Part shown: in pieces, positions 13,816-31,189 of the stretch
Position numbering within the stretch: position 1 is the first letter of the stretch
How the letters are laid out: each line of letters begins with the position of its first letter
Sequence record: PV764601.1
DNA: 64,000 bases
Strand: one strand, 5' to 3'
Program-made: the position numbers and the translations under genes
Notes under the pieces: model-generated
Told to the model about the DNA's origin: nothing
The model's input: the letters and a program-made list of their open reading frames with translations, nothing else
Database searches by the model: none

Positions 13816-13825
13816 ACGCGGCCCC

Positions 13826-14131: not shown

Positions 14132-14141
14132 GGTTTGTCCT

Positions 14142-14801: not shown

Positions 14802-14926
14802 TAGAACTCCACGAATCCGCCGCCGGTAGGGCGCAGGTTGGCACCACACAGGAAGCCAAGGCAGCGTTCCGTATTGGGCATGTTGTAGTAGCCGCAGTAG
14901 CTACACTTGATTGCGTCCTTGGGCAT
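14801..14926 (-). CDS. 41-aa Zn-ribbon micro-protein (not in ORF track)
   Basis: MPKDAIKCSYCGYYNMPNTERCLGFLCGANLRPTGGGFVEF*; TAA/ATG overlap with the next gene. Confidence 0.6.
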   Translation of the reverse strand: MPKDAIKCSYCGYYNMPNTERCLGFLCGANLRPTGGGFVEF

Positions 14927-14948
14927 GAACAACGGTCGATGCAGAAGC

Positions 14949-15332: not shown

Positions 15333-15529
15333 TTCAGCTTCTCCGCAGCCTTGTCCATGATCTTGAGTTCTTTGCGCTGCTCGGCCTTGCAAATCTTGAT
15401 GATCTTGTCCAGTGCCGGGTGGACCCGTCCACCGTAGAAGCAACCGCTTTCGCACAGGGACTGGATCGCACCAAACATGGTCAGGTTGGTATGAGCCTCA
15501 GCGTGCTGGGTCAACAGGGTCTTGCTCAT
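15329..15529 (-). CDS. Hypothetical protein
   Basis: Coupled ORF. Confidence 0.65.
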   Translation of the reverse strand: MSKTLLTQHAEAHTNLTMFGAIQSLCESGCFYGGRVHPALDKIIKICKAEQRKELKIMDKAAEKLK

Positions 15530-15696
15530 TTGCGCTTCCCCTTCTTTCGGGTGTACTTACTCTTGCCCCGCCTGCGCGGCTCGGGCTTGCTGTGAGTGTG
15601 GATGCGATGCCCTTCCCATGTAAACATTCCATCAGAGGGATACGTTCGGGGCCGTGGCACAGGGAACTCTGTGATGGTATCAGTAGGTCCTAGCAT
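15526..15696 (-). CDS. 56-aa basic-tail micro-protein (not in ORF track)
   Basis: MLGPTD...PRRRGKSKYTRKKGKRK*; overlaps both neighbours; tail shared with 30541..30666. Confidence 0.75.
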   Translation of the reverse strand: MLGPTDTITEFPVPRPRTYPSDGMFTWEGHRIHTHSKPEPRRRGKSKYTRKKGKRK

Positions 15697-16013
15697 CAGA
15701 AAGGAATATCCTCGTCATTGAGTGGAACGCTGTGATCCTCGTAATCATGATGATCCGGCTGCGGCTTAGGCGCACGCTTCGCACGTGCCTCTTCCTGCAC
15801 AGGGTTGCCCGGTCGCCACTCGTTGACACAGACGTAATGATGACCCGAGCCCTTGGATGCCAACACGTTGAGGCGTACCACGTCGGACTTCTGCTCGCGT
15901 AGGAATGCAATGAATTCCTCAACGTCGAGGGTCAGTGCCGTAACGGCGTGTCGGGGTGCGTGCATCGGTGGACGATAGGCCCGCATGCCCTGCGGGAATT
16001 TGATCTTGCTCAT
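15696..16013 (-). CDS. Small protein ending in an SSB-Ct-like peptide (DEDIPF)
   Basis: C-terminus LNDEDIPF resembles the bacterial SSB DDDIPF tail. Confidence 0.65.
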   Translation of the reverse strand: MSKIKFPQGMRAYRPPMHAPRHAVTALTLDVEEFIAFLREQKSDVVRLNVLASKGSGHHYVCVNEWRPGNPVQEEARAKRAPKPQPDHHDYEDHSVPLNDEDIPF

Positions 16014-16336
16014 GGTTGGTTCCATTCAATGTCAACAGGGACGGCTCCCACAGAGCCCATGTACGGTTCGTAGTTCAGGTCGGCGCGCAGAGTGTATCGA
16101 CCCTCCCAGCAAATGCAGCCCTTGATCGTCAGGTAGATGGGTTGGTCCTGTTCGTCACGTGCGACAATGTTGCCTACGTGAGCGCTTACAGTCATTTGCT
16201 CCACGGTGCCTTTCAGGTAGAAGGGAACTTCGCCTATTCGGGCTACTTCGCGTATCGTACGTGCATCCCAAATCTCAGCGGTCTTGCCCACAAGCTGATC
16301 GGCTATTCGGTTGAGTTCATCCTCATTGAAAATCAT
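16010..16336 (-). CDS. Hypothetical protein
   Basis: Coupled ORF. Confidence 0.65.
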   Translation of the reverse strand: MIFNEDELNRIADQLVGKTAEIWDARTIREVARIGEVPFYLKGTVEQMTVSAHVGNIVARDEQDQPIYLTIKGCICWEGRYTLRADLNYEPYMGSVGAVPVDIEWNQP

Positions 16337-16683
16337 TGCACGCCGTCTCCGAAGATGTTTGACAGGTCGTTGTGGTAGTTGATGTGATCGAACTGTTCGG
16401 CCAATGTCTTGTGTCCCTTGGCAACTAACCGTTCGTCAATCAGGTCGAGGGCAGCACGGTAGGAACCGTATACCTTTTGGTAGGCTTCACGCTCAGGGTC
16501 CACCACGTTGAGGGGTACCGGCTCCCCGAACAGGTGTAGGCAGAATTCAGAACACAGGTCTTCGATGATCCAACGATGACCGTCGCTTTGCTCAATGCGG
16601 ATGCCAAGTTGGTTGGCTGCAAGCATACGAAGGGCGAGCAGTTCCCAGTCAATAACCATTGCTTTACTCCAATCGGTACTCAT
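16333..16683 (-). CDS. Hypothetical protein
   Basis: Start moved to MSTDW. Confidence 0.65.
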   Translation of the reverse strand: MSTDWSKAMVIDWELLALRMLAANQLGIRIEQSDGHRWIIEDLCSEFCLHLFGEPVPLNVVDPEREAYQKVYGSYRAALDLIDERLVAKGHKTLAEQFDHINYHNDLSNIFGDGVQ

Positions 16684-17072
16684 GCGTATGGATCCGTGTC
16701 TTGAAGGTGTAGGCACCACACGTCTTCGGTGACGCCTGCGTCGGAGGGATGCGGGTCCCACGCCAACTGTCCATCCTTGTAGATGACAGTGTGATGCCCT
16801 CGGCCTCTTACCGTGGGACCGCTTACGAGATACACACCCTGTTTGTGCTTGGTGGTGTACTTGATGTAGAGCCCGTGCTCAACCAAGAAGCTTTCAACGC
16901 TCTCCCAAAAGTCAGATGCGTCGTCTTCGCTACGGTTGAATTCGGGAACGGCGCTTAGGGGAATTTGCAGCAGGGTGGCAATAGCCGCCTCAGTGCAGTT
17001 ACCTGTCTTCGAGTTGGGGCCCACGAACTTGGTTTGGCGCACTGCTTTGGACAGGTCAAAGTCTGGGATCAT
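16680..17072 (-). CDS. Hypothetical phage protein (GNC...HTVI...DPHP; papain/C39-like pattern possible)
   Basis: Start moved to MIPDF, 21 nt after the promoter motif. Confidence 0.65.
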   Translation of the reverse strand: MIPDFDLSKAVRQTKFVGPNSKTGNCTEAAIATLLQIPLSAVPEFNRSEDDASDFWESVESFLVEHGLYIKYTTKHKQGVYLVSGPTVRGRGHHTVIYKDGQLAWDPHPSDAGVTEDVWCLHLQDTDPYA

Positions 17073-17092
17073 ATCGTCCTCCTTGTATCCTA

Positions 17093-17120
17093 TATTTACA
17101 GGATTGCCATTTTGGCAACC
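17093..17120 (-). promoter_or_regulatory. Putative phage promoter CCTGTAAATA with palindromic box
   Basis: Minus strand GGTTGCCAAAATGGCAATCCTGTAAATA, just after a terminator. Confidence 0.7.
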
Positions 17121-17138
17121 TCTCATTATTTCCGGCAA

Positions 17139-17168
17139 AAGAAAAGGCCCCAATTGGGGCCTTTTCTT
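17139..17168. terminator. Intrinsic terminator, perfect palindrome (possibly bidirectional)
   Basis: aagaaaaggccccaattggggccttttctt. Confidence 0.85.
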
Positions 17169-17488
17169 CAACGCATCAAATCGCCATAGCCGTCAGACTT
17201 GGTTTCAACGATGTCCAGGATCACGCTGATTGCATTGCACACTGCCAGCACAGGAGCAGCAACCACAGCGAACATCACCAGCTTGGACGCCTCACCGCCG
17301 TTGTCACCGCCAGAAATCAGGACAGACAGCATGGCAGTCACGGGGATAATCAGGATGCTGACCACGGTGGCCAAGAACTGGAGGCCACCCTTCTTCAAAT
17401 GTCCTGCGTAGAAGTTGTGGAACCCCAGCATGCCCGTGAGCAGCGCGATGATGATGTAGAGGCCACGATTACGGGTAGAGTATGGCAT
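17168..17488 (-). CDS. TM2-domain membrane protein
   Basis: ALLTGMLGFHNFYAGHLKKG TM2 motif plus further helices. Confidence 0.8.
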   Translation of the reverse strand: MPYSTRNRGLYIIIALLTGMLGFHNFYAGHLKKGGLQFLATVVSILIIPVTAMLSVLISGGDNGGEASKLVMFAVVAAPVLAVCNAISVILDIVETKSDGYGDLMR

Positions 17489-17498
17489 GAGTCTTTCC

Positions 17499-17801
17499 TT
17501 ATGGTTTGATTGAATTGAGCACGCGACCAGCAAACGGAACCAAGCAGAGATTGCCGTCGATCACAGTGGTCATTTGTTCCAGTGCATCATCGCCTAACGA
17601 AGTGTTGGGCGATTCGTAGTAGCCGCCGTCCATCACGTCTTCGGTCTTGTTCTGTAGCACATGATCCATTGCCTCGGCGAGGTCACGTGGGTGCAGCGTC
17701 CTGCTGGCCTTCTCTAGCTCGTCAGCTACTTCGGTCTTACCTGCACGGCGCAGTACATTGAGCGCCATCGTGAAAGCTCCCGAATCTACAATGTGCATCA
17801 T
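17499..17801 (-). CDS. Hypothetical protein
   Basis: Start moved to MMHIV. Confidence 0.6.
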   Translation of the reverse strand: MMHIVDSGAFTMALNVLRRAGKTEVADELEKASRTLHPRDLAEAMDHVLQNKTEDVMDGGYYESPNTSLGDDALEQMTTVIDGNLCLVPFAGRVLNSIKP

Positions 17802-18043
17802 GGCGCCTTGAGTTCCTCTTCGGTGAAGTATTCGATGCTCTTGACGCACTTGACGTTACCGGAACCTGCTTCGATCAGCACGCCGTTGTGTCGAGGGCAC
17901 CATTCTTTAGCGTGACGATTGGACTTGATCGTAAGCACGTTGATCCATACAATCATGCCGACAACGAACGTAACGCACACCACTATGGCAGCACGGCCGA
18001 TGAACAACCACCAATCATCTACGATCCTAAGTAGCTTCTTCAT
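17798..18043 (-). CDS. Small membrane protein
   Basis: Hydrophobic helix plus WC...C. Confidence 0.7.
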   Translation of the reverse strand: MKKLLRIVDDWWLFIGRAAIVVCVTFVVGMIVWINVLTIKSNRHAKEWCPRHNGVLIEAGSGNVKCVKSIEYFTEEELKAP

Positions 18044-18390
18044 AGGTCAATCCCATAGACTGCAAACAGCAAAGCCACTGCTTTGTTGTTGTCGATCTTT
18101 CGGTCCACCACGTCCTGTAGAATCTGGCGCGTCTGCTCTTGCTGGGAAACGGTAGGACCGTTCACAGAGTCGGCGCAGATTTGTGCCATCGGAAGGAAGT
18201 GGAAACGGACGGGTTTGCCGTCATCATCCACTACAACGTGGTCGGTGTTCTCAACCGTCCACCACTCTTCGAGCAACGTCCTCTTGCCTCCCGAACCAAA
18301 CTTGGTGCGCTTGTTGTAGAGGGGACGGAACTTGGTGGTCTGTTCTTTGAGCCAGTGTTCCTGCGGCTTCGGTGCGACAATGTGTGTCAT
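18040..18390 (-). CDS. Hypothetical protein
   Basis: Coupled ORF. Confidence 0.65.
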   Translation of the reverse strand: MTHIVAPKPQEHWLKEQTTKFRPLYNKRTKFGSGGKRTLLEEWWTVENTDHVVVDDDGKPVRFHFLPMAQICADSVNGPTVSQQEQTRQILQDVVDRKIDNNKAVALLFAVYGIDL

Positions 18391-18797
18391 TTTCGATTCC
18401 TGTTAACGGCGTAATCAACGCTGAGTTGCCATACGTTGTCACCGGGAGCGTATCCACTCAAAGGCCCTTGGATCAGGAAGGTGCCCTCTAGGGAAACACC
18501 TTCTACCAGTCGGTTCTTCTTGAACGTGCGTGGGTGCAGCGGACGCTTGACCTCGGTCCTAGCACGTTCAAACTCAGCTACCATATCCTCTGGACCGAAC
18601 GCAATCAGCGCAGAGGTTTGAACTACGAGGGTCCAATCGGTGTTGAGGATTTCGTCTCTACTGAGGGGCTTACTCATCGGTAAGTGGTTGCCCTCAAGGA
18701 GGCGATCTATCGAAAGAATCAAAGGGTAGGGCTTACCGTACAACTCGGACAGTGTCACCACGCGTGGACGTGGAGGGCCAAGGCCAGTACCATTCAT
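18387..18797 (-). CDS. Hypothetical protein (start uncertain)
   Basis: 3' part of track ORF 18387..19007. Confidence 0.55.
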   Translation of the reverse strand: MNGTGLGPPRPRVVTLSELYGKPYPLILSIDRLLEGNHLPMSKPLSRDEILNTDWTLVVQTSALIAFGPEDMVAEFERARTEVKRPLHPRTFKKNRLVEGVSLEGTFLIQGPLSGYAPGDNVWQLSVDYAVNRNRK

Positions 18798-18925
18798 GCG
18801 GTCTTCTCCACACGTTGAGGAAAGACGATTGCTCCATGCGCGAACAGGAGCGGCGTTACACTCGGGTCGCCGTACCAAAATTCCTCGCTCTTGATCGAGG
18901 CACCCAGCATGGTGCGTAGCGAACG

Positions 18926-19123
18926 TCACAATGGATAATACCCTGTGTTCAAAATCGTACCGTCGGTCAGTTCGTACAGGTAGATAGGCTTGACAACAGG
19001 CTTGCATCCCAAGTCTCGGTACATCTTGGAAGGGTGGCGTACCCGCTCTAGCAAGATTGCTTTGTACTCGGCTATGGTCGTGCCATGCACTACCTGCATC
19101 TTGTCAATCCATTTGCCCATCAT
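18926..19123 (-). CDS. Hypothetical protein
   Basis: Coupled ORF. Confidence 0.6.
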   Translation of the reverse strand: MMGKWIDKMQVVHGTTIAEYKAILLERVRHPSKMYRDLGCKPVVKPIYLYELTDGTILNTGYYPL

Positions 19124-19430
19124 TTCTCTCCTTGCGTTCGGGCAGCCGTTTCAGCGACCGCATCATTTCGTCCACTGCCTCCCACGATTCGCAGTTGGCA
19201 AGGTAGCACCATTCGGTGCTCCACACGTGCACGACGATGCCGCCCTTCGGATACTCGCCGTCGATAAACGGCGTCTTGGTGTAGACCGCTCGGTACTTGC
19301 GGCCGTTCTCCAACTCGTACTCACGCGGCTCTGTGCTACACTGGCACTTGTGCCACTTTCGGTCGCATAGACCGCAGGTATCTGGACAGATGCAGTCCAT
19401 ACACGAATACGATCCACAGTGGCAAGTCAT
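19104..19430 (-). CDS. Cys-rich hypothetical protein
   Basis: Nine N-terminal Cys residues. Confidence 0.65.
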   Translation of the reverse strand: MTCHCGSYSCMDCICPDTCGLCDRKWHKCQCSTEPREYELENGRKYRAVYTKTPFIDGEYPKGGIVVHVWSTEWCYLANCESWEAVDEMMRSLKRLPERKERNDGQMD

Positions 19431-19445
19431 CGTCGGTCTCCTTGG

Positions 19446-19859
19446 TTACAGGAACTTGCTGGGGTCGAAGCTCACGTTGAGCAACGTGAATTGAGGACCA
19501 GCCACGAACATGCCAACCTCTGCACCAATGCGAATGTCCGGATTGGTGAACACAATGATTGCACTCTCATCACCCTCAGCAATACTCTTCATGACCGTAC
19601 TGACAAGATCGGCCGCACCTTCGTAGGCGTGGGGTGGGCAGATGAGCGAGACAACACCGGCGCGACGGTAGGGACTCGGGTTGAGGAACCCTGCGCTTTC
19701 CAGCGCAGTCATCACGTCATCCAGATTGTAGTTGCCTGCGTCGTACTCTTCCAGAATCGGACGCGTGAGATTGAACAAGCGGTCGGTGATACGGGGCACG
19801 TCTGCTGCATCTGCGGCAGGAGCATCGCTGGGCCAACGGATTTGCAAAATGATTTTCAT
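19446..19859 (-). CDS. Hypothetical protein
   Basis: Coupled ORF. Confidence 0.7.
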   Translation of the reverse strand: MKIILQIRWPSDAPAADAADVPRITDRLFNLTRPILEEYDAGNYNLDDVMTALESAGFLNPSPYRRAGVVSLICPPHAYEGAADLVSTVMKSIAEGDESAIIVFTNPDIRIGAEVGMFVAGPQFTLLNVSFDPSKFL

Positions 19860-20635
19860 GGGTATGCCTCAAAGGTAAAGTCAGTCAGCTGCCGCGACAA
19901 AGCGTAAGCTGGATTGGATGAATGACACTCGGTAACAAACTCGTTGGGATCAAGCGGCGACGTACTAAGCATCACCACCTTGTTTGATTCCCGTAACCGC
20001 GCAGGGCTTCGCACCAACACACCTCCATTGAACCCAACCTCCGCTACGGGTAGCTGGGGCACGTCATCAATGAAGTTGAAAGCCACGATCCCGTCGTCGG
20101 TCAACACACTACGTAGCTCCCGCAGGAACTCGGTTGAAAAGAACTGCTGGCCCATCGTGTTGTTCTCGAAGGGGTAGCAGTCCACCAGCACGAAATCAAG
20201 GTACCCAGCTTCGGTACGCTTGACCACTTGCACTGCATCGCCCTTAATGACTGGTCCGACGTCAGGCCACAGCTTTGCCACCGCGATCATTTCGGGACTT
20301 GCTTCGACAGACACTAGGGCTACATCGGGCCACGTGTAGCGAATGTAACGCGAGGCATTGCCGCCACCTAAACCCAGCACCAGCGCACGCCTATTGCTTT
20401 GACGGCGGCACAGCATCCACAAACCGGACATGGCTGAGTACAGGTATGGGAACGACAGGTAAGACGGAAGGTGCGTGTGCACCCCTGTGTGCAGCGAACA
20501 ACTGGACGCCTCAACTTGCTGACCAATCTGTAGCTCTATGGCGCAGGTTACGATGTACTCAACATCGGGAGTGCTCTCATCCACTGCAATGTAGACAGCT
20601 GAACTCCCGGTGCCGTACTTGGCTAAAATCCTCAT
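19856..20635 (-). CDS. Spermidine-synthase-like class I SAM-dependent transferase
   Basis: ALVLGLGGG, SVEASPEMIAVAK, GDA, LDFVLVDCY, FFSTEF...L..DGIVAFN. Confidence 0.8.
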   Translation of the reverse strand: MRILAKYGTGSSAVYIAVDESTPDVEYIVTCAIELQIGQQVEASSCSLHTGVHTHLPSYLSFPYLYSAMSGLWMLCRRQSNRRALVLGLGGGNASRYIRYTWPDVALVSVEASPEMIAVAKLWPDVGPVIKGDAVQVVKRTEAGYLDFVLVDCYPFENNTMGQQFFSTEFLRELRSVLTDDGIVAFNFIDDVPQLPVAEVGFNGGVLVRSPARLRESNKVVMLSTSPLDPNEFVTECHSSNPAYALSRQLTDFTFEAYP

Positions 20636-21030
20636 TCGCCCACCGGACCGTAGCGAATGATTTTGTCGAGCGTATCTTGGATCATGGTCTTGCTGCTACC
20701 GTCTGGAAGGTGGACAACCCATTCACCATACGACCGAATGTCCATAGTCCACCCACCTACCAACGTCGGGCTCCTACGTATCCGCAGGCGAGTGTTGCGC
20801 TTGGGCTCGATCAGGTACTGGGTTTGATCGTCGCTAATGGCCTCAAGGTATTCGTAACCTGGGTACTTGCGGTAGCGAGGATCGTCCACTGGCATCTTGC
20901 CCGTAAGATGCACAGCTTTGTTGGGGCCGAGGTCAGGCAGGTGGCCTTCACGGAACACAGGTTCGCCATCTTGTGTCATCCACAACGTGTGCCCATCGGC
21001 CTTGGTCCATCCTGTGAGCTTGACGGTCAT
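20632..21030 (-). CDS. Hypothetical protein
   Basis: Coupled ORF. Confidence 0.7.
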   Translation of the reverse strand: MTVKLTGWTKADGHTLWMTQDGEPVFREGHLPDLGPNKAVHLTGKMPVDDPRYRKYPGYEYLEAISDDQTQYLIEPKRNTRLRIRRSPTLVGGWTMDIRSYGEWVVHLPDGSSKTMIQDTLDKIIRYGPVGE

Positions 21031-21182
21031 GCGGTAGCCTCCTTGTTGGGCAGCAGCTTCATGATCTTCTGGACCAACGCGCTAGACAGCCACACCTTCT
21101 TGCCGGTCTTTACGTCGGTGGCCACCACGGGACCGTATGGGCAGGTGGGTCGAGTTGCTTTGCACAGCGGGCAATCATTCAT
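21027..21182 (-). CDS. Small hypothetical protein (CPLC)
   Basis: 3' part of track ORF; MNDCPLC start. Confidence 0.5.
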   Translation of the reverse strand: MNDCPLCKATRPTCPYGPVVATDVKTGKKVWLSSALVQKIMKLLPNKEATA

Positions 21183-21693
21183 CGTGGGCCTCCCTACACT
21201 CTGCCTGTTCTGCCTCACGCTTGGCCCGGATGACCCACGCGGCTTTGTGTTGTGGATGCAGCTGACTCCAGTAAGCAGGGCGGTTCTCTCGCTTGACTGC
21301 GTTGTGCTGGTGTTCGCACCACAGTTCGTAGGCACGATCCCCATACTGCAAAATGTCGGTCTCCAACTGCAACCGCTCTGCCTCGCGTTCTTCGTTGCGG
21401 CGGCGCAGCTGCCGGGCCATGCGCAGACTGGCAATTTCGCTGGTCACCATAGCGACGGCCAACGCTTCCATGTCGTGACTGTCGGCTCCACGCTCAATAA
21501 AGTGGGTGAGCACTGGTTGGATCGCAGCATGCAACGCCGCGTCAAACTCTTGGCCCATGTCACTGAGGGTTTCAGCTGGGGTGTACAGTCGAGTGTACGT
21601 GTTGGCCTTCGGAATCTGCTGGAAGGCAGGCGCAGGCATAGTCACGGTTCCAGTGACCACACGTGGGGGTTTGCTCAGGTCAATTGTGTCCAT
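21175..21693 (-). CDS. Hypothetical protein
   Basis: ORF. Confidence 0.7.
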   Translation of the reverse strand: MDTIDLSKPPRVVTGTVTMPAPAFQQIPKANTYTRLYTPAETLSDMGQEFDAALHAAIQPVLTHFIERGADSHDMEALAVAMVTSEIASLRMARQLRRRNEEREAERLQLETDILQYGDRAYELWCEHQHNAVKRENRPAYWSQLHPQHKAAWVIRAKREAEQAECREAHDE

Positions 21694-21735
21694 TGTCTCT
21701 CCACAGTGCGTCGGTGATTGCTTGTTCGTGGTTGG

Positions 21736-21867
21736 TCATACCAACATTTCCTTATCGCAATGATCGCACGTGACTACGGAACCTCGTTGATCGCCTTCGA
21801 CCTCAAAGGTGTTGTCACAATACGGACAGTCTACGTGGGTGTATAACATGCTGACGGCTTCTTCCAT
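21736..21867 (-). CDS. Zn-ribbon micro-protein
   Basis: CPYC...CDHC. Confidence 0.6.
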   Translation of the reverse strand: MEEAVSMLYTHVDCPYCDNTFEVEGDQRGSVVTCDHCDKEMLV

Positions 21868-22133
21868 CAGAGCACACTCGGTACGTGGTGGATGATCCCG
21901 AACTGCTCGCCAGTGGGGAACGGCCACACTACCACGTCGTTGACCGCCAAGTGTTGGGCCTTGACGCTCAGGTAGCTGACGCTATGGCTGTGACGGTGGG
22001 GAACCACACGCAGCAACAGGTGGTCGGGATCGAGGCTGGCTTCGTACACCTTGGCGAAGCTAGGCGGGTGCAGCCAGCAGTTCCTTTCTTCGCTCCAACC
22101 CGAGATTGGTTGGATGGTCAGATCGAAGGTCAT
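21867..22133 (-). CDS. Hypothetical protein
   Basis: Coupled ORF. Confidence 0.6.
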   Translation of the reverse strand: MTFDLTIQPISGWSEERNCWLHPPSFAKVYEASLDPDHLLLRVVPHRHSHSVSYLSVKAQHLAVNDVVVWPFPTGEQFGIIHHVPSVL

Positions 22134-22396
22134 AGATCACCTCGGGCGCTCTTGCATTGGGTGGGACGGTCGGCCCCATCTTTGGTCAGTAGATGGAACA
22201 CCGTAGCGCCTAGCAACGCAGGCCACGTGGCGCTGACGATCCCAGCTTCGGTGATGGTCAACATGCCACCGGCCTCACCGGGGCATTCCTTGGCGTACTG
22301 GCGCTCCACGATGCCGGTGATTAGACCACCTAGCATCAGGTAGATGCACAGCTTGGTGAAGAACTCGGTCTTGATGTTGAAGGTCTTGTTGGTCAT
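22130..22396 (-). CDS. Membrane protein
   Basis: Two hydrophobic segments; start MTNKT. Confidence 0.65.
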   Translation of the reverse strand: MTNKTFNIKTEFFTKLCIYLMLGGLITGIVERQYAKECPGEAGGMLTITEAGIVSATWPALLGATVFHLLTKDGADRPTQCKSARGDL

Positions 22397-22578
22397 AGCC
22401 TTTCCAGTAGAAGGAAGATGCCAGTGTAGCAGGCACCGAAACCAAAGGCGCTGGCGAAGACAGGAGTGATGCCGGTACGTGCACGACCACGCCATGCACC
22501 ACGTCCCAGCCACAGGAACACAAACGACAGCAGGACGAATACCACGATGAAGAGAATGCTGAGTGCGTCCAGGTTCAT
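22393..22578 (-). CDS. Two-helix membrane protein
   Basis: Hydrophobic, coupled. Confidence 0.7.
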   Translation of the reverse strand: MNLDALSILFIVVFVLLSFVFLWLGRGAWRGRARTGITPVFASAFGFGACYTGIFLLLERL

Positions 22579-23333
22579 GGCTTGTCCCTCTTCGTAGGTA
22601 CGGGCTTCTTGTGGTTCATCAATGCGTCGATGGCCTCGCGGAACTCAGGCGGTGGGCAGAAGCCATGATGCTCAATGTAGTGGACCAGCGTTTCCTTCCA
22701 CGTCACGTTTACCTGACGGCCACGATACCACATGCCCTTGCCGGTACCAACATGCAGATAGCGACCGCTGCCCAAGTCTCGGCACTGTGACATAGTGCAA
22801 CGACTGGTTCCCTTGGTGGTCTCGCGGGAGACACGCAAGCGATCCTTCTCCAGCTTCTTGATACGGGCCAAGAACGCAAGGCGCACGGTGTTGGATACCC
22901 AACAGAGGCCCATCCGATCCTGCTCGGGATCAAGCTCGATCCAGTTTGCACCTAGGTGCGCGTTGACCTCGTTCTCGGTACCGCAGTCACAGGGCTCACC
23001 CGGATCAGCGTCGCACTCACGACACTGTGGTGCCTGTTCGGGAGTCCTACGCGGGCGTACCCCTGGGGAACGGGCCTGCGGGGCGGGAGCATCATCATCA
23101 TCATCGGCTTCTTCCTCATCCTCCTCTACCTGCATGCGACGGTAGCCAGAGGTCAGCACACGCAGCTGCCGTACAAAGTCGTCATCGTCGGTGGACGTGA
23201 TGGTGACCACGGCGTCACCCGAATGGGCGATGAGGATCAGTTTAGTGCGCGTCAGTTCAAGGGTAGTGCGCTCCCACCCCGAGGTGCGGAGGAACTCGGT
23301 GATGGCTTTGGTGACGGAGTTGGTGACGTTCAT
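22575..23333 (-). CDS. Hypothetical multi-domain protein
   Basis: Acidic linker and Cys clusters. Confidence 0.75.
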   Translation of the reverse strand: MNVTNSVTKAITEFLRTSGWERTTLELTRTKLILIAHSGDAVVTITSTDDDDFVRQLRVLTSGYRRMQVEEDEEEADDDDDAPAPQARSPGVRPRRTPEQAPQCRECDADPGEPCDCGTENEVNAHLGANWIELDPEQDRMGLCWVSNTVRLAFLARIKKLEKDRLRVSRETTKGTSRCTMSQCRDLGSGRYLHVGTGKGMWYRGRQVNVTWKETLVHYIEHHGFCPPPEFREAIDALMNHKKPVPTKRDKP

Positions 23334-23848
23334 TACTGGTCCTTGTGTTGGCAGATGCAGTTCGGTCCCACGTGGCAGTCCTCAGTTGGAGGGAAGCGCA
23401 CTGGCAGCAGGCCCCGATCGTCGGCGCGGTCGATGATGATTTCCACGTCATCGATGGTTTTGTTTGTGCAGCCGTTCCCGAAGATGCCAGTGATGAGCAG
23501 GGTCGGTCGGTTGATGCACAGCCATTGCCAGCGTCGGGCCATTGCCGCCACGTCTTCCACGTCTTCCTCGGGATACTTGCCTGTCAGGAAGTGGTAGGTC
23601 TGCCTGTTGCCTCCTAGTGCAGCCAGCAGCGGATCAGGTTGGTCACTACCCGTAGATAGGGAGGTCGAGACCTCTCCGTACACTTCGGTTTCGTTGATCG
23701 CGTTGGTTAGCAGAGCACGCACGTGACCGGCCGGGTAGTTGAGGGTCAGTACGGCACCTATGCTGCGGCCGGAGTCCAGTCGGATGCGGAAGATCGAAGT
23801 GACCAGTTCGGATATGGTGTCTTCGTCCAGCAGTTCGGATATCTTCAT
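23333..23848 (-). CDS. Hypothetical protein, MKISE(L/I)L paralog family
   Basis: N-terminus aligns with 30656..31186. Confidence 0.7.
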   Translation of the reverse strand: MKISELLDEDTISELVTSIFRIRLDSGRSIGAVLTLNYPAGHVRALLTNAINETEVYGEVSTSLSTGSDQPDPLLAALGGNRQTYHFLTGKYPEEDVEDVAAMARRWQWLCINRPTLLITGIFGNGCTNKTIDDVEIIIDRADDRGLLPVRFPPTEDCHVGPNCICQHKDQ

Positions 23849-24381
23849 TTGGCGTCCTCACAGTGGCGGCACGGCTCAACAGTACGGAAGTTCTCGTTGA
23901 TGACCTTGCCGTCATCGCAGTGCGCGCACGGGTTACGTGCACCTTCCCCACGCTCGGTCATGGCCACCAGTTCTTGCAGCTGTCCGTACTCGGGTTGGTC
24001 GCTCATGTCCAGATGACCTATAGCAAACTTCAACGCCTCCCGGTACTTGGGATTGAGAGCGGGTGCTGAATCTTGCGTGTCGCCAATCAGCGCGCGAATG
24101 TCGTCAACCGGGCTGCCCTTGTAGTCACGATCAGCTGCCCAACGGTCGGCCAGCTGACGCAGGGTGTTGACAGGAACCACGCTCGGATCAAGCACGCTGT
24201 CGATCAGGTCACGCAGGCGCATCAGGCTACCCCGATCGGTGGGCAGGCGGAAACGAGGGCCTTCCGGGTCACCTTCGTAGGCAAACTTTATCGTGTGGGC
24301 AATCACGTCTTTCTGGAGGGTGACGATCACAGCCGACTGCTGGTTGTGGGTGTCGTTCATGATGCAGAGCTTCGGGCTCAT
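23845..24381 (-). CDS. Hypothetical protein
   Basis: ORF, C-terminal CAHC...CRHC. Confidence 0.7.
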   Translation of the reverse strand: MSPKLCIMNDTHNQQSAVIVTLQKDVIAHTIKFAYEGDPEGPRFRLPTDRGSLMRLRDLIDSVLDPSVVPVNTLRQLADRWAADRDYKGSPVDDIRALIGDTQDSAPALNPKYREALKFAIGHLDMSDQPEYGQLQELVAMTERGEGARNPCAHCDDGKVINENFRTVEPCRHCEDAK

Positions 24382-24494
24382 GGGGCTTCCTTGTTGGGCT
24401 ATGGGTGATGTAGCGAACGTCTACGAAGTCGGGGATAAAAGGACCACCCCGTTGGACCCGTTCTTTGAGGGGCATAGCGCCTCCTTTGTCCCTA

Positions 24495-24520
24495 TATTTA
24501 CAGGATGCCAAAATGGCACC
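24495..24520 (-). promoter_or_regulatory. Putative phage promoter CCTGTAAATA with palindromic box
   Basis: Minus strand GGTGCCATTTTGGCATCCTGTAAATA, just after the ART terminator. Confidence 0.7.
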
Positions 24521-24545
24521 CTCGACTCGGGAGCGCAGAAACGAC

Positions 24546-24567
24546 AAAGGCACCCTTTCGGATGCCT
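24546..24567 (-). terminator. Intrinsic terminator after the ART gene
   Basis: Minus strand AGGCATCC-GAAA-GGGTGCCT-TT. Confidence 0.7.
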
Positions 24568-24574
24568 GAGTCGC

Positions 24575-25363
24575 TCATTTGCGTTGCTTTACTAGCTTGA
24601 CGTGGGTTACGTGCACCCGGTGCTTGGTGCTATCGAATGAGGAAGAGTGTCCGGACGGACTACCCGGTAGATCGTGGACGCTGTGACCCAAGACCTTGAA
24701 CTTGTTACCGTGGTGCAGCACCGTTTCTGCCTCATGCCGGGTAAGGCCATCATCAACGTGGTGAGGTACGTGCATAATCTTGGAGCCTTTGGGCAAATGA
24801 ATCTTGACGACGTGATGCTCTCGATGCGTACCCGTGTGCTCGCTATGACCGAAGGAAGAAATGGCTACTGAGGGGCTATGGCTGGTACTGGTGTACCCGT
24901 GGTCAGTGAAGGTGTCTCCCTTCTTGAGCGCCTTGATCTTGTGGGCGGCTTCGCCCACCCCACGGTACACAGCGGTCTTGTGTTTCAGCTGATAACTGGT
25001 AGCGTGCCCCAATCCTTTATGCAGATCATGTAGCGAATGGTCGGTGAAGTTGTAGTCACCGTTGCCTTTGATCTTACCCTTGTGGGAGGGATGGCGGAGT
25101 TCTCGGTTAAAATCGTTGTGTCCGATACTTCTGTAGTGATCTACTGCATGGCCAACGTGTTCGGATGTTTGGCGTGCCCGAGTTACGTGTGCCTTGTGCC
25201 CTTTTTGGTCTTCGGGATGTAAGGAAGTACGTTTCAACGCATGAGCGTGTTCTTCGGAGGAAGCAGTCTCACTAGATAGCGAATCGTCTTCGGGTGCGGT
25301 GTAGTCTAGGTGATGATCGGTCCAGACGAACTTGTTGGACCCTACGGTAGACAGGACTCTCAT
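24575..25363 (-). CDS. His-rich mono-ADP-ribosyltransferase (VIP2/Alt/Mod-like, R-S-E class)
   Basis: VYRGV, GYTSTS, HEAETVL..G.KFKV catalytic motifs; about 39 His in 262 aa by hand count. Confidence 0.85.
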   Translation of the reverse strand: MRVLSTVGSNKFVWTDHHLDYTAPEDDSLSSETASSEEHAHALKRTSLHPEDQKGHKAHVTRARQTSEHVGHAVDHYRSIGHNDFNRELRHPSHKGKIKGNGDYNFTDHSLHDLHKGLGHATSYQLKHKTAVYRGVGEAAHKIKALKKGDTFTDHGYTSTSHSPSVAISSFGHSEHTGTHREHHVVKIHLPKGSKIMHVPHHVDDGLTRHEAETVLHHGNKFKVLGHSVHDLPGSPSGHSSSFDSTKHRVHVTHVKLVKQRK

Positions 25364-25448
25364 GGTTTCTCTGCTTAGGGGAAGACACCTGAAATTAGAG
25401 GACTCAGATGATGCACAGGTGCAGGGTAACGTCGGGCATGGGATTTCC

Positions 25449-25700
25449 TTATGCGTGCCGGCCCACTACGGGCATCAGTGTGTTGAGGTGGATGGCAGTA
25501 CACTGCACGTAATGATACCCGCAGTAGCCGACGGTGAACGTGACAAGACTCGGATAGGCGGTGGGCCAGTCGTGAATCGTGTCGCCCTTTACCTTACCGC
25601 CCCATGCTTTGAGGGCATGTCGGAAGCCTGCTTGCGTGCGCACCACGAAGGTGTTGTGGGTCACGGCCTCGACGTTGGGCAACGGGGTGTCGGTACTCAT
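25449..25700 (-). CDS. Hypothetical early protein
   Basis: Coupled ORF in the sigma70 cassette. Confidence 0.65.
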   Translation of the reverse strand: MSTDTPLPNVEAVTHNTFVVRTQAGFRHALKAWGGKVKGDTIHDWPTAYPSLVTFTVGYCGYHYVQCTAIHLNTLMPVVGRHA

Positions 25701-25963
25701 GCGGCTGCGTCGATGGCGTTGTCGGGGAGTACCTTGACGATGACCAGTCGGCCCGTGCTGACCAGCAGGTACTCGGGATGCTGCTGTTCGACGAAGTGCC
25801 AGTAGTTGCCGTGGCGCTGCACGAACTCAGGGTCGGCCACAGCGGCACGCCCTTCATCCAGCAGTTCCAGCGTGCGCTCACCTTTGACCTTGATGGAGAA
25901 CCCGTCAATGTCGGTAGCGGAAGAGGCGATCAGGTTGGAGAAGAATGCGGAGAGCTTGTTCAT
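25697..25963 (-). CDS. Hypothetical early protein
   Basis: Start MNKLS. Confidence 0.65.
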   Translation of the reverse strand: MNKLSAFFSNLIASSATDIDGFSIKVKGERTLELLDEGRAAVADPEFVQRHGNYWHFVEQQHPEYLLVSTGRLVIVKVLPDNAIDAAA

Positions 25964-26044
25964 GATGGTTCCTTTAGGTCGGGAGGGCAGACACGACAAA
26001 GCCGCCCGAAGGCGGCAGGGTCTAATCTAGGTTTACAGGGTGGG

Positions 26045-26380
26045 TCAGAGGAACTTGGCGTCGTCCGGACCTACTTGCTCGCGTGCCCAGCTGGACCGGC
26101 AGACGAGGTAGCCGCCCCATGTGTCCGGGTTGGTTGCGTGGGGCACCAGCGCAGCCATGAGGCCGAGGGATTCCAGCGCGTCAAGGTGGGCGGCACCGCC
26201 ACGGCCAGCGGGAGCGAGACCGAAGGTGTGGGCCTTGTCGAGGGGGACGAACAGGGGACCGTCGGCCGTCATGCTTTGCAGCAGGGAGTGGCGGCGGAAC
26301 TGCTCGGCCTTGTTGGCTTTCTGCATGGCATCGCGCTGTGCATCAACGTCCGAAGTGGTCTTGGCGGTCTTGGCGTTCAT
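26045..26380 (-). CDS. Hypothetical early protein
   Basis: Start MNAKT (or MTMNA). Confidence 0.65.
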   Translation of the reverse strand: MNAKTAKTTSDVDAQRDAMQKANKAEQFRRHSLLQSMTADGPLFVPLDKAHTFGLAPAGRGGAAHLDALESLGLMAALVPHATNPDTWGGYLVCRSSWAREQVGPDDAKFL

Positions 26381-26405
26381 GGTCATTCCTTTGGTGCTGG
26401 TTGGG

Positions 26406-26525
26406 TTAGGCGCGGACGGTGGTGGAAAGGGTGGGGCCGACGAACGGGGCGCTGCCAATCATGGCGACGGCCCAAAGGATGGCCGAGATAGCAACGGCGG
26501 TCAGCAGGATGGTCTTGATCTTCAT
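26406..26525 (-). CDS. 39-aa membrane/signal-like peptide (not in ORF track)
   Basis: MKIKTILLTAVAISAILWAVAMIGSAPFVGPTLSTTVRA*. Confidence 0.55.
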   Translation of the reverse strand: MKIKTILLTAVAISAILWAVAMIGSAPFVGPTLSTTVRA

Positions 26526-26535
26526 GGTCGGTTCC

Positions 26536-26898
26536 TTAGTGGTGGGCAGCGTTGCGGTTCAGCAGGCCGAGGAAGGTAAAGAGGGGCATGACGGCTTCGG
26601 GCTTGAAGTGGGTCTTCATCTTTTCGATGCAGTCGCGCAGTTCGTCGCCCCGAACGCCCTTGGTGGCGAACCCGATGGCCTGCAACTCCCCTTCGTGGTA
26701 TCCCATGTGAGCTTCGGGGTAGGCGGTCAGGACAGGGCCATACACAAATCGAAGGGCCGGAGCAGCTTGCACCAACATGCCTGCCGCTTCCATCTCCGAT
26801 TCATCAAACAGGACAGTAATGTCGTTGGCGGTATGCTGGACCACCAGTCCCATTTCAACGGCGGTCTGTACGATCAGGGCGAGGACGTTGGCGTTCAT
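26536..26898 (-). CDS. Hypothetical early protein
   Basis: ORF with C-ending codon bias. Confidence 0.7.
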   Translation of the reverse strand: MNANVLALIVQTAVEMGLVVQHTANDITVLFDESEMEAAGMLVQAAPALRFVYGPVLTAYPEAHMGYHEGELQAIGFATKGVRGDELRDCIEKMKTHFKPEAVMPLFTFLGLLNRNAAHH

Positions 26899-26915
26899 GA
26901 GGGGGCTCCGAAGGG

Positions 26916-27260
26916 TTAGACGATGCTGTCGAGGAAGGCGATGACCGAGGCGATGCGGTCGCGCTCCACGTCATAGTCGTCAAGCGTGGCGCTCAGGCTG
27001 TTCCGAAGCATGGCACCGCGCAGGTAAGGGGTGGCGCACTGCACATGACCCGCACGTTCCAGTTCCACCGAGGCCACCAGCTGGGCATTCTTGTTCAGCA
27101 TGAAGGTCAGGATAACCTGGGAGCCGTCCTGCTCCGGGAACTCCACCGTCATCAGGTGGCTGGACAGGTTGGCGGTCCGAAGGTCCATGCGCTCGGCGGC
27201 AGCGCGTACCGGCATCAGTTCAGCGATCAGGGGACGGTTCCGAGGGGACTTGCGCTTCAT
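26916..27260 (-). CDS. Hypothetical early protein, first gene after the sigma70 promoter
   Basis: GGAGA RBS. Confidence 0.75.
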   Translation of the reverse strand: MKRKSPRNRPLIAELMPVRAAAERMDLRTANLSSHLMTVEFPEQDGSQVILTFMLNKNAQLVASVELERAGHVQCATPYLRGAMLRNSLSATLDDYDVERDRIASVIAFLDSIV

Positions 27261-27343
27261 GAGATTCTCCGAGGTATCTGACTAGGGGTTCCGATAGGTG
27301 GGTCCCGGTGGGCATCAGCCCCTTGTTTCCCTACCACAAGCCT

Positions 27344-27372
27344 ATTATGCCTGGACCCTATCCCCCTGTCAA
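27344..27372 (-). promoter_or_regulatory. Host sigma70-type promoter
   Basis: TTGACA-17 nt-CATAAT on the minus strand. Confidence 0.85.
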
Positions 27373-27456
27373 CCACTGTTCATTTTCGTTCAGCTGCCGT
27401 TCAGGTTCGATTCAGGGACAACTTGCACGAAATTGGAACCTATCGCCGGGCTATGC

Positions 27457-27492
27457 AAAAGGGCCTACCCCACGTCAGCAGGATAGGCCCTT
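27457..27492 (-). terminator. Intrinsic terminator
   Basis: Minus strand AAGGGCCTATCC-loop-GGGTAGGCCCTT-TT. Confidence 0.75.
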
Positions 27493-27496
27493 CGGA

Positions 27497-27655
27497 TTAG
27501 TGCTTCGGACTGTGTGCGGTCAGGTGGACCACGTGGTAGATATGCCCGCTGTCGGGATCAGTGTGCTGGGAGTGGTGCGATACCTTGTACTTGGTGCCGG
27601 GATGCAGGATGACCTCGCCTTCATGGTGGTTGAGCTTCCCGATGTTGTACCACGT
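27497..27655 (-). pseudogene. 3' relic of a second His-rich ADP-ribosyltransferase gene
   Basis: Startless frame TWYNIGKLNHHEGEVILHPGTKYKVSHHS...HIYHVVHLTAHSPKH* aligns with the ART C-terminus HEAETVLHHGNKFKVLGHS. Confidence 0.7.
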
Positions 27656-27928
27656 TCATTGCGCTACCTCCGCATCCATCACGTCCAGTACGCGGTGGTG
27701 TCCGATGCTGCCTTGGTCGTCGTGGAGTTCCACAATGTCACCGAGGCACAGGAACAGGTAGGTCTGGGACAACGTTTTGCCGGTGGATTCGCCGTTGTCG
27801 TCAAACTGCAACACCGCCAGTGTATCCGTGGTGTTCATCAGGTGACTGCGCTCAACACGATCCGGGTCGCTCACCCAACCGCCGAACGCCCTGCATACAG
27901 GCTGCAACACAACTCGATACATGCTCAC
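27656..27928 (-). CDS. Hypothetical protein
   Basis: Coupled ORF; its TGA is in frame with the ART relic. Confidence 0.65.
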   Translation of the reverse strand: MSMYRVVLQPVCRAFGGWVSDPDRVERSHLMNTTDTLAVLQFDDNGESTGKTLSQTYLFLCLGDIVELHDDQGSIGHHRVLDVMDAEVAQ

Positions 27929-28083
27929 TTGGACTCTCCTTTGTATCGTTGCGCCTGCTTCTTGGCAAGCACCATTTCCAGCATCTTGATGTGGTCACGC
28001 AGACGTTCTTCTGTCCACTGTTCGTACTGGTGGCCGCAGCCACACGGCGTGTCCCAACACTTAGGGCAATCACTCAGACTCAT
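27925..28083 (-). CDS. 52-aa Cys-motif micro-protein (not in ORF track)
   Basis: MSLSDCPKCWDTPCGCGHQY...; overlaps both neighbours. Confidence 0.65.
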   Translation of the reverse strand: MSLSDCPKCWDTPCGCGHQYEQWTEERLRDHIKMLEMVLAKKQAQRYKGESK

Positions 28084-28448
28084 TCTGCGGCCTCCACGGG
28101 GAAGGTGACGCCCGTCAGTTCGGTGGCGATGGAGAGGATCATGTCTTCGGTGTGCGTGATGGTGGTCAGTGCTTTGTGCAGACCCGCGCGCTGTTGTGCA
28201 AGGGAACTCAGGATCGCCAGTACGTGAGCGCGCTGTTCATGGCTGGCCTCTTCCAGCTTCTTCGTCCACTCAGCATGCAGAGCTTCGGTGGTGAGGTGCA
28301 TTTCATGCAGGGCGCTACGCGTAGAGCTGAAAGCGCGGAGTCCACGTGCGATACCCTGCATCGCCTCTGTGCCCGAGGACAGAGTGAAGTTCTGCATGTT
28401 GATGCTGTTGAGGGCATTGGCCAGTTCGTCATTGCTAAGGTCAAGCAT
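28080..28448 (-). CDS. Hypothetical coiled-coil protein
   Basis: Coupled ORF. Confidence 0.7.
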   Translation of the reverse strand: MLDLSNDELANALNSINMQNFTLSSGTEAMQGIARGLRAFSSTRSALHEMHLTTEALHAEWTKKLEEASHEQRAHVLAILSSLAQQRAGLHKALTTITHTEDMILSIATELTGVTFPVEAAE

Positions 28449-30057
28449 TGTTGTCTCCGGGTACGTGTCGCTGTAGGGTGTGGTGAACGATCTCGGCCAA
28501 CGGTTGTTCAGTGCTGGTGCGCACCATTGCGTTGAAGTGATCGCGGATCTTCGTGGCCGTAGCCTTACGGAAGAAGTGGACGTGGGAGCCTCGGTTGAAA
28601 CGCTGGATCAGCGGGGAAGGATCGTAGTAGGCGTTCGGCCCGATGGACAGCGGCAGCATCACAGCCCACACGGGACCATCCTCGCCACCAAGATCAGCAT
28701 CGGCAGGCACCGGGTTGGTGGTCACCTGCCATTCGGTATCAAGGGGAACGACAGCACCGTGATCGATAGCAGTAAGCGGCAGGGGTTCGGCCCACCACAC
28801 GTCATCTGGGTCCTTGCTCAGGTGGTTGTGTTCGTGCAGCGCGCGCTCAGCATCACGGGCAAGACGCAGTGCCTCAGCACGATCAATCCCACGTTCCTCC
28901 AACTCAGTGTCGCTGGCATCAACGTAGAACCGAAGAGCATCATACGCTCGCTTGAGGTTGGTGCACGGAGTCTCCATCCCATCAAAGGTAACGAAGCGTG
29001 CCATATCGGGATCAGTGCAGACGTACCACTGGCCATCAATCCTCCGGCAGTCACCCTTCTGCAAAGCATCGACGCGCGCTGCCGAGAGGGTGTTGAGAAT
29101 ACCGGTCATGCGTTCCTCCTGTGCAGCAAAGAATGCAACGGTAGACCGAATGCTTTCACGCATCTGCTCAGAGGGAAGAGTCTCGGTCAGGACAATGGCT
29201 GCGTCCTTGCCACGCTGAGACACAGCCCGCATTTCATGTGCAGCGAGCGCCACCGCGTGCAAGCCCTGTTCGGCTCGCTCACGCAGCGCCATGTACTTGT
29301 TGCAACGTTCAACCAAATCGTTGGGATCACTGGTGGTCATCGGCGCATCCGAGTCAAGGTAGTCGAGGTAATCAGCAGAGCCAAGGCGCATATCGGGAGG
29401 CAGGGATTCGAGGCTATCCACCGGGTCCATGCAATCAGCAGGCAGGCTACTGATCTTCATGGTGACCGAGGGCGACGGTGCACCAGCAGCATGAGGTGCG
29501 GGGTTCTCCCACAGTAGCTCATGGCCGTTCGGGTGGTCTGTCGTGCGTGCACAGTAGCAGGGTAGAGACTCTGCACCCCGATGCACGTGATGGGTGGACA
29601 CAGGGTCTACGGGTACAGCGCGCGCATCCCGTGCTTCCTCCACCGCTGTCTCTGATTGTACATCGGCTACGGCATCCCGTGATGCGCGCGCTGTACCCTC
29701 CGGCATCACCGTTACCCTAAGCTCATCCTCCAGCCACCGCATGCACATGGGCGTACCCGTCTCGCTGTATCGAGCAAGGTAGCACTCGGTGCCGAAGCTC
29801 ATGAGGTAGATGCCACCCTTGTACCCGTCGTATGCACCCACACCTTCCCGAAGCCTGTGCAACAACTCTGCCTTGCTGATGGTCTCGGGGCTAGGAGTGA
29901 ACGCCAAGCATTGGTAGTAGCCCCGGTAACTGTGCGGCATGTGCAGGCCATAGAAGCATTGACCTTCCGGCTGTGTCTCCACCCACTTGATGATCTGACC
30001 CAGCGTCAGGGGCGCGTTCGCATCCTCATCGTATCGGTCACGGTCAATCTTGAGCAT
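28441..30057 (-). CDS. Large mosaic hypothetical protein
   Basis: Start moved to MLKID; PHSYRGYY...GYKGG N-terminal module. Confidence 0.75.
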   Translation of the reverse strand: MLKIDRDRYDEDANAPLTLGQIIKWVETQPEGQCFYGLHMPHSYRGYYQCLAFTPSPETISKAELLHRLREGVGAYDGYKGGIYLMSFGTECYLARYSETGTPMCMRWLEDELRVTVMPEGTARASRDAVADVQSETAVEEARDARAVPVDPVSTHHVHRGAESLPCYCARTTDHPNGHELLWENPAPHAAGAPSPSVTMKISSLPADCMDPVDSLESLPPDMRLGSADYLDYLDSDAPMTTSDPNDLVERCNKYMALRERAEQGLHAVALAAHEMRAVSQRGKDAAIVLTETLPSEQMRESIRSTVAFFAAQEERMTGILNTLSAARVDALQKGDCRRIDGQWYVCTDPDMARFVTFDGMETPCTNLKRAYDALRFYVDASDTELEERGIDRAEALRLARDAERALHEHNHLSKDPDDVWWAEPLPLTAIDHGAVVPLDTEWQVTTNPVPADADLGGEDGPVWAVMLPLSIGPNAYYDPSPLIQRFNRGSHVHFFRKATATKIRDHFNAMVRTSTEQPLAEIVHHTLQRHVPGDNNA

Positions 30058-30544
30058 CTTGTTCTCCTTGTTGGTCACGCTTGATTGCTTCCCAGTTACG
30101 CAGACTCCACTCGCCCGCCTCGTATGCTGGTCCTCGCAGGGGATCACCATTCTCATCAACCCGTACTGCCCTGAGTCCTGACATGCTACGGAACACCCGA
30201 GCCTCAGCCAAGCTCACGGCCTCTCGTAGGTTCCAGTCTGTCTCCGCCTTGCCTAGCAGCCTGCGCGTGGTACCCGGCTGCATGGACAGGGCGTGCATAC
30301 TATCGGCCAGCCCCTCACCTAACTTCTGCATCGACTCCGGCGACACGCTATCCCATATCAGGGGAGGATCATCCTCGGTAGCGCACGTTGCAAGCTTGTG
30401 TGCCTCCACTGCTACCCCGATCATATAGGGTGGTTCAAACTCATACCCACCCAGCTTCTCGATCAGGGATTCGTAGTTCCCGGACGACACCTCATCTGCC
30501 AGATCAATCAAATCCCGCTCAGTCAGAATGTCACTCAACTTCAT
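30044..30544 (-). CDS. Hypothetical protein, MKLSDIL paralog family
   Basis: Coupled ORF. Confidence 0.7.
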   Translation of the reverse strand: MKLSDILTERDLIDLADEVSSGNYESLIEKLGGYEFEPPYMIGVAVEAHKLATCATEDDPPLIWDSVSPESMQKLGEGLADSMHALSMQPGTTRRLLGKAETDWNLREAVSLAEARVFRSMSGLRAVRVDENGDPLRGPAYEAGEWSLRNWEAIKRDQQGEQDAQD

Positions 30545-30666
30545 TTCCGCTTACCCCTCTTCCTAGTGTACTTGGATTTCCCGCGTTTCCTCACTCCCAT
30601 AGTGGTAGCCAATTCGGTCCACCCTTTGAAGAACCCATACAAGGCTGGGCTGATCCTAAACATCAT
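30541..30666 (-). CDS. 41-aa basic-tail micro-protein (not in ORF track)
   Basis: MMFRISPALYGFFKGWTELATTMGVRKRGKSKYTRKRGKRK*; GAGGT RBS; overlaps both neighbours. Confidence 0.75.
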   Translation of the reverse strand: MMFRISPALYGFFKGWTELATTMGVRKRGKSKYTRKRGKRK

Positions 30667-31186: not shown

Positions 31187-31189
31187 TTT

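Follow-up and report, generated by a model that had tools for sequence, protein, structure and literature searches.

How do two micro-proteins with unrelated N-terminal parts come to end in the same strongly basic peptide, and what might that peptide do? The question is raised by two small genes, here termed micro1 and micro2, in the final 64 kb of the Xanthomonas jumbo phage PhiXhv-12 (PV764601.1, 227,648 bp). This stretch of 64,000 nucleotides is referred to below as the window; its position 1 is position 163649 of the record, and megablast matches window positions 13000-33000 to PhiXhv-12 at 100% identity. The phage infects X. hortorum pv. vitians and has a GC content of 55%. According to its authors, it represents a new lineage with no genome homology to database phages (PMC13340338). 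The two proteins have in common the C-terminal 14-mer RGKSKYTRK(K/R)GKRK, which in each case is followed directly by the stop codon. From the comparison of alleles it is concluded that micro1 and micro2 are translated genes and that, judged by the pattern of substitution, the part under the strongest constraint in both proteins is the tail.

The shared tail and the selection acting on it

A first-pass annotation, based on the letters of the sequence alone, had drawn attention to two unannotated open reading frames (ORFs) sharing a tail. Both ORFs are present, on the minus strand (Table 1); on the plus strand the frames are not open and the translations are unrelated to the peptides that had been quoted. 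The description of the pair as unannotated is only half right, as GenBank lists micro2 for each of the three PhiXhv phages (XYR92926.1 in PV764601.1), while micro1 is missing from the annotation of PhiXhv-12 and PhiXhv-15 and appears only in that of PhiXhv-16 (XYR93392.1). The deposited annotation of PhiXhv-12 misses one real micro-protein gene, micro1. The start codons of the two genes, the Shine-Dalgarno-like sequence upstream of micro2 and the overlaps are conserved across alleles. A 6-codon extension of micro2 reaching back to an ATG at 30684 varies freely as a peptide among the same alleles, so that the start is placed at 30666 or 30663, the second of these ATG codons giving a protein of 40 aa.

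Table 1. Features of the two micro-gene loci, in window coordinates
Feature	Position	Strand	Description
micro1	15526-15696	-	56 aa; Pro-rich, probably disordered N-terminal part followed by basic tail; ends PRRRGKSKYTRKKGKRK
micro1 tail module	15526-15570	-	RGKSKYTRKKGKRK and TGA stop overlapping the ATG of the next gene
Gene upstream of micro1	15696-16025	-	109 aa, orphan; stop overlaps micro1 start by 1 nt (TGATG)
Gene downstream of micro1	15329-15529	-	66 aa, orphan; ATG overlaps micro1 stop by 4 nt (ATGA)
micro2	30541-30666	-	41 aa; amphipathic helix followed by basic tail; ends VRKRGKSKYTRKRGKRK
micro2 tail module	30541-30585	-	RGKSKYTRKRGKRK and TGA stop overlapping the ATG of the next gene
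Gene upstream of micro2	30656-31279	-	207 aa as annotated, orphan; overlaps micro2 by 11 nt
Gene downstream of micro2	30044-30544	-	166 aa, acidic, orphan; ATG overlaps micro2 stop by 4 nt (ATGA)
Segment absent from contig L066	30541-30662	-	122 nt; micro2 minus its first 4 nt

The identity of the tails is well beyond chance. When all 4,115 stop-to-stop ORFs in the whole genome that are 30 aa or longer were compared pairwise over their final 14 residues (8.46 million pairs), only three pairs exceeded nine identities; micro1 and micro2 agree at 13 of 14 positions, and the other two pairs are DNA repeats. The background maximum is 9/14. The tail is found in two copies only in the 227,648-bp genome, both by six-frame window scans and by an HMMER search of the whole record, in which the copies have E-values of 1.6e-4 and 4.7e-4 for a search space of one genome. 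The N-termini, by comparison, are indeed unrelated, their local alignment score of 16 lying below the mean of 17.5 for shuffled sequences (p = 0.68); a pattern F..P..Y..G.F..W that emerged from alignment with MAFFT was dismissed as N-terminal homology on the strength of the same shuffles.

Nucleotide differences between the tails are concentrated at silent positions. The last 14 codons of micro1 and micro2 differ by eight synonymous codon changes and one non-synonymous change, the conservative K/R replacement, and the codons cited in the first-pass annotation are correct. Of 39 nucleotides, 11 differ and 10 of these differences are silent (binomial p ~2e-5); every tail codon with four or more synonymous alternatives differs between the two genes.

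The same pattern is seen within each locus. Four close relatives of PhiXhv-12 are available in the phage collection, PhiXhv-15, PhiXhv-16, Ep026 and Ep032, with 97-98% identity. Alleles were compared among PhiXhv-12, PhiXhv-15, PhiXhv-16, Ep026 and Logan contigs L071-L075, the Logan assemblies contributing a third allele of micro1 (L071) and a further allele of micro2 (L073). Across these alleles the tails show no amino-acid change and up to four synonymous changes per comparison: the three micro1 alleles differ by at most four in any single comparison, and micro2 likewise has four, including an exchange between the serine codons TCC and AGT. The parts upstream of the tails have accumulated at least nine replacements and one in-frame indel. 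Over the whole of micro1, PhiXhv-12 and PhiXhv-16 are separated by 11 synonymous and two conservative non-synonymous codon changes (binomial p ~4e-5 against a neutral non-synonymous share of 72%), and the first 39 residues are identical despite seven synonymous changes. For micro2, the comparison with PhiXhv-15 gives six synonymous and three non-synonymous codon changes, and the Ep026 allele carries an in-frame deletion of two codons.

Both genes thus display the marks of protein-coding sequence, namely an excess of synonymous change together with a conserved start, stop and frame. The earlier suggestion that selection acts on the peptide is upheld, as differences within the tails are all synonymous and those between them nearly all so. 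The antisense frame is not conserved, and at neither the 3' nor the 5' junction does the RNA fold better than shuffled sequences (z 0.0 to 0.6). Given the synonymous pattern, the unconserved antisense frame and the lack of RNA structure, both ORFs therefore behave as translated genes. Also considered was a programmed frameshift by which the tail would become fused to the upstream protein; it is unlikely because the sequence preceding the junction differs in PhiXhv-16 while the ATG is kept.

Public runs belonging to 13 studies, with wastewater and a honey metagenome among them, contain DNA nearly identical to window positions 15000-16400. The phage lineage is thus more widespread than the three French isolates suggest. 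In these runs, where the phage is present only as contigs, micro1 shows no new variation.

Two other features of the genome may be noted. A DNA repeat of about 166 bp with 87% identity, located at two distant sites (L061:10697-10860 and L063:5051-5214, or about 90,697-90,860 and 125,051-125,214 in record coordinates), contains two ORF ends that are 13/14 identical. At 151,980-152,204 of the record, on the plus strand (L064), a frame of 74 codons encodes almost nothing other than G and R (GRRGRR...), and probably represents a different reading frame of a further charge-block or repeat-coding region.

Coupled junctions and the origin of the pair

Both genes overlap both of their neighbours, as had been claimed, and the TGATG, ATGA and 11-nt overlaps can be read directly from the sequence (Table 1). 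A Shine-Dalgarno-like GAAGGGG for the gene downstream of micro1 lies within the micro1 tail codons, and a corresponding GAGGGG for the gene downstream of micro2 lies within those of micro2; these motifs coincide with the K(K/R)G codons only. Other ATGA-coupled genes of the region have C-terminal ends unrelated to the tail. Sequence comparison of the genes flanking micro1 with those flanking micro2 revealed no similarity, and the idea that the two loci are paralogous cassettes was rejected on this ground.

The history of micro2 is illuminated by Logan contig L066, where diverged homologs of the two genes that flank micro2 occur in unchanged order but micro2 itself is absent. The missing segment of 122 nt is flanked in PhiXhv-12 by the direct repeat AATGA (30663-30667 and 30541-30545). 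When it is deleted from the PhiXhv-12 sequence, the junction seen in L066 results, in which the gene upstream and the gene downstream overlap each other directly. Since the gap is exact and the neighbours are intact, micro2 is a self-contained unit that has been precisely inserted or deleted where a stop and a start codon overlap. Such an empty site was found for micro2 only, none being found for micro1.

On the simplest account, the pair originated when a whole micro-gene unit, from ATG to ATGA, was duplicated into another gene junction; the N-terminal part would then have diverged quickly while the tail stayed frozen. A transplant of the tail alone fits the data equally well, and whole-gene duplication with N-terminal divergence is preferred as the simpler option in view of the fast N-terminal change seen among near-identical phages. 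By the same token, the first-pass description of the tail as a portable tag is unproven, as an old duplication of the entire gene followed by divergence of its N-terminus explains the data equally well.

Several features of the surrounding genes may be recorded here. The gene upstream of micro1 has no family match in profile scans. Its C-terminus, ...NDEDIPF, resembles the tip DDDIPF of bacterial single-stranded DNA-binding protein (SSB), which recruits SSB-partner proteins; the PhiXhv-16 allele ends in ...EEQAPY, which is likewise acidic and closes on an aromatic residue. The second gene downstream of micro1 (14949-15332, minus strand) encodes an orphan of 127 aa with the motif IGWRKRVISI-W. 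Homologs with 41-52% identity occur in unrelated-looking phage contigs from Logan (L067, L069 and L070), one of them adjoining a T4_Y16D-family gene and another near a muramidase, and on this sequence evidence the 127-aa protein is a member of a wider family. Contigs L067-L070, which carry homologs of this gene, show no synteny with the micro1 locus and no similar micro-ORF.

The gene upstream of micro2 is the first gene after an intergenic region of ~0.45 kb. This gap (31280-31755) lies just upstream of the operon that begins with the gene before micro2. On its minus strand there is a single sigma-70-like match (31445-31417), a yield not above that of shuffled sequences. Promoter and terminator scans likewise gave nothing exceeding the shuffle level.

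Relatives and resemblances

Neither micro-protein has a family match in Pfam (E up to 10), PHROGs or NCBIfam, the sole NCBIfam entry scoring 12.8 bits against a cut-off of 130. A word-based protein search with micro2 returned nothing, and a full HMMER search with micro1 against 1.84 billion representative proteins returned a single, spurious match to a repetitive S/Q/P-rich protein. No relative of micro1, of the gene downstream of micro2 or of the second gene downstream of micro1 was found in IMG/VR. Searches with the back-translated sequence RGKSKYTRK matched nothing in IMG/VR; the metagenome collection gave 34 matches and the genome collection 11, which is approximately the chance rate, and none of these is a comparable tail; exact-sequence look-ups recovered no called genes. 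The family is therefore an orphan confined to this phage lineage.

Resemblances to known systems are confined to short basic stretches. ArfA is a small protein with a basic G-K-x-x-Y-x-R-K stretch that is also present in the tail; in stalled ribosomes its basic tail, KGKGSYxRKGK, fills the mRNA channel left empty. However, there is no similarity to the micro-proteins beyond this stretch. A six-frame search of the phage with the ArfA profile (PF03889) found no match up to E = 10, with a positive E. coli control, and no ArfA chain was matched in a search of the PDB. The motif G-K-[GS]-[AK]-K-Y-T-[RS]-K of small GIY-YIG proteins also resembles the tail, and RGKSKYTRK or SGKSKYTSK occurs within the domain of three GIY-YIG-like ORFs in public contigs (L054, L026 and L027). 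The micro-proteins, however, have neither the GIY and YIG strands nor the catalytic half of the domain. At 41 and 56 aa they are too short to accommodate it, and the GIY-YIG profile (PF01541) likewise matches nothing in the phage up to E = 10.

The best match in the PDB, obtained with phmmer, is to the arm of the Ubx homeodomain (RRRGRQTYTRY), which aligns with residues 13-36 of micro2 at E 0.08-0.11 and is not significant. The likeness is one of type: the Antp/Ubx arm (RKRGRQTYTRY), and the R-G-R of AT-hook and H-NS proteins, are short, unstructured basic peptides of the form [KR][KR]RG[KR]xxYTR, and homeodomain N-terminal arms lie in the DNA minor groove. In contrast, the micro-proteins have neither a homeodomain nor any other fold behind the tail, their tail is C-terminal and contains a second [KR]GKRK unit, and they belong to a bacterial virus.

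Among phage proteins, phiX174 J, the T4 internal proteins, T4 MotB and the phiKZ ribosome-binding protein are likewise phage-encoded and highly cationic, and they act on polyanions of the host or the phage. The T4 internal proteins offer a further parallel as unrelated proteins with a common short targeting peptide, although in their case the tag is N-terminal and cleaved. No sequence relationship between the micro-proteins and any of these small basic proteins was found. MotB, a nucleoid protein, and the phiKZ protein are larger, as described in a review (PMC11323111).

What the tail may bind

Both proteins are strongly basic. micro1 has a pI of 11.0 and a net charge of +10, with seven prolines and five aromatic residues before the tail, and AlphaFold2 predicts no regular structure for it (pTM 0.14). 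micro2, with a pI of 11.7, a net charge of +11.5 and six aromatic residues, is predicted by AlphaFold2 to form a helix over residues 7-29. Residues 4-21, in which F, Y and W are abundant, are predicted to be amphipathic (hydrophobic moment 0.47-0.55, mean hydrophobicity ~0.2). The tail itself contributes a charge of about +9 and consists of two [KR]-G-K units with one tyrosine and glycine spacers; it is predicted with low confidence or as disordered. Neither ORF contains a transmembrane segment.

On this basis a mode of action can be proposed. micro1 and micro2 are taken to be translated from polycistronic messages of the minus strand, with coupling to their neighbours via the overlapping stop and start codons TGATG and ATGA. 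The tail would serve as an extended polycationic arm that binds a polyanion, nucleic acid being favoured, whether through the groove or backbone of DNA or through rRNA, and would thereby hold two different N-terminal peptides, one Pro-rich and disordered (micro1) and the other an amphipathic helix (micro2), at one cellular site. The high pI of 11-12, the charges of +10 and +11.5 and the weak Ubx match are consistent with polyanion binding. The earlier idea of a tag for binding to nucleic acid, ribosomes or membranes, or for localisation, fits the chemistry of the tail. That the tail is a polyanion-binding arm, most likely for nucleic acid, which brings two N-terminal peptides to one site, is the preferred interpretation, and it is put forward tentatively.

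A number of observations weigh against this interpretation. No ligand is indicated by homology; the resemblance to Ubx falls short of significance, and neither the ArfA nor the GIY-YIG model matches. The composition of the tail would suit an anionic membrane or an acidic protein no less than a nucleic acid. The contigs from wastewater RNA libraries that contain the locus do not show transcription. The existence of a relative without micro2 means that the gene is dispensable in at least that genome. Finally, some tail alleles of PhiXhv-16 and PhiXhv-15 share a 21-nt stretch with one mismatch, and occasional gene conversion may therefore add to the identity of the tails.

One alternative is that micro1 and micro2 are membrane-active cationic peptides, in which the tail and the aromatic or amphipathic N-termini bind the anionic inner or outer membrane; they could then act as disruptin-type lysis helpers, depolarise the membrane or serve as anchors. 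The predicted F-, Y- and W-rich amphipathic helix of micro2, followed by a tail of charge +9, and the five aromatic residues that precede the tail of micro1 are in keeping with this. However, micro1 is Pro-rich, with neither a predicted helix nor a hydrophobic segment, no transmembrane segment exists in either ORF, and the sole element common to the two proteins is the hydrophilic tail. Both genes, moreover, are set among rows of small orphan genes, and no lysis gene was recognised in their vicinity. A membrane role is considered unlikely.

An explanation of similar, low probability is that the tail docks on an acidic protein surface, such as the poly-Asp block of the phage gp32-like SSB, or on the interior of the capsid as a packaging or localisation tag. 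The phage does encode proteins with extreme acidic blocks, and a repeat at 49854-50700 was seen in the comparison of ORF ends. The gene upstream of micro1 has an acidic C-terminus, and the product of the gene downstream of micro2 is largely acidic, including its C-terminus. Short targeting peptides shared by unrelated phage proteins are also known, the T4 capsid-targeting sequence being an example. Against docking, the flanking genes of the two loci are unrelated, a homolog of the gene downstream of micro2 occurs without micro2 in L066, and the micro-genes are found among early-looking small genes, outside any structural module.

Less probable again is an action in cis, whereby the nascent C-terminal peptide would pause the ribosome at ATGA and tune re-initiation at the downstream gene, in the manner of leader and arrest peptides. 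In both genes the conserved part comprises the last 14-17 residues, approximately the length held inside the ribosomal exit tunnel, and ends exactly at the stop that overlaps the next start, the N-terminal parts being less constrained. Yet the first 39 residues of micro1 are unchanged in PhiXhv-16 despite the synonymous changes among their codons, so that the N-terminal part also matters as a peptide. In addition, the downstream ribosome-binding site is not sequestered by RNA structure, and the downstream gene in L066 is coupled directly to the upstream gene without micro2. Polybasic sequences are not known as typical bacterial arrest motifs.

That the tail is functionless, a by-product of Shine-Dalgarno constraint, gene conversion or low-complexity chance, is very improbable: the coincidence of GAAGGGG and GAGGGG with the K(K/R)G codons and the 21-nt stretch shared by some alleles speak for it, but Shine-Dalgarno constraint can account for those codons at most and cannot fix RGKSKYTR, other ATGA-coupled genes end in unrelated residues, substitutions are almost only synonymous both within and between the loci, and the genome-wide background does not rise above 9/14.

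The tail could also be a portable localisation tag on self-contained ATG-to-ATGA cassettes that insert by microhomology at overlapping stop/start junctions without disturbing their neighbours, the tag delivering different effector peptides to one polyanionic site, be it the nucleoid, the ribosome or a condensate of the phage SSB poly-Asp block. This scheme is speculative and, on present evidence, improbable.

Phage genomes contain very many small genes that are unannotated or unexplained, few of which are accompanied by clear evidence that they are real. In PhiXhv-12, comparative data alone show that purifying selection acts on two micro-proteins and locate the constraint in a module of 14 residues, and this module provides a small and cheap experimental handle on what the tail binds. 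The general interest of the orphan family, at present modest, would grow once a ligand for the tail is identified. Were the tail merely a generic cationic one, the result would still be a well-supported correction to the annotation of a phage that is a candidate for biocontrol. If, on the other hand, it is a transferable targeting tag, it would be usable to direct cargo in Xanthomonas and would show how micro-genes spread between coupled genes.

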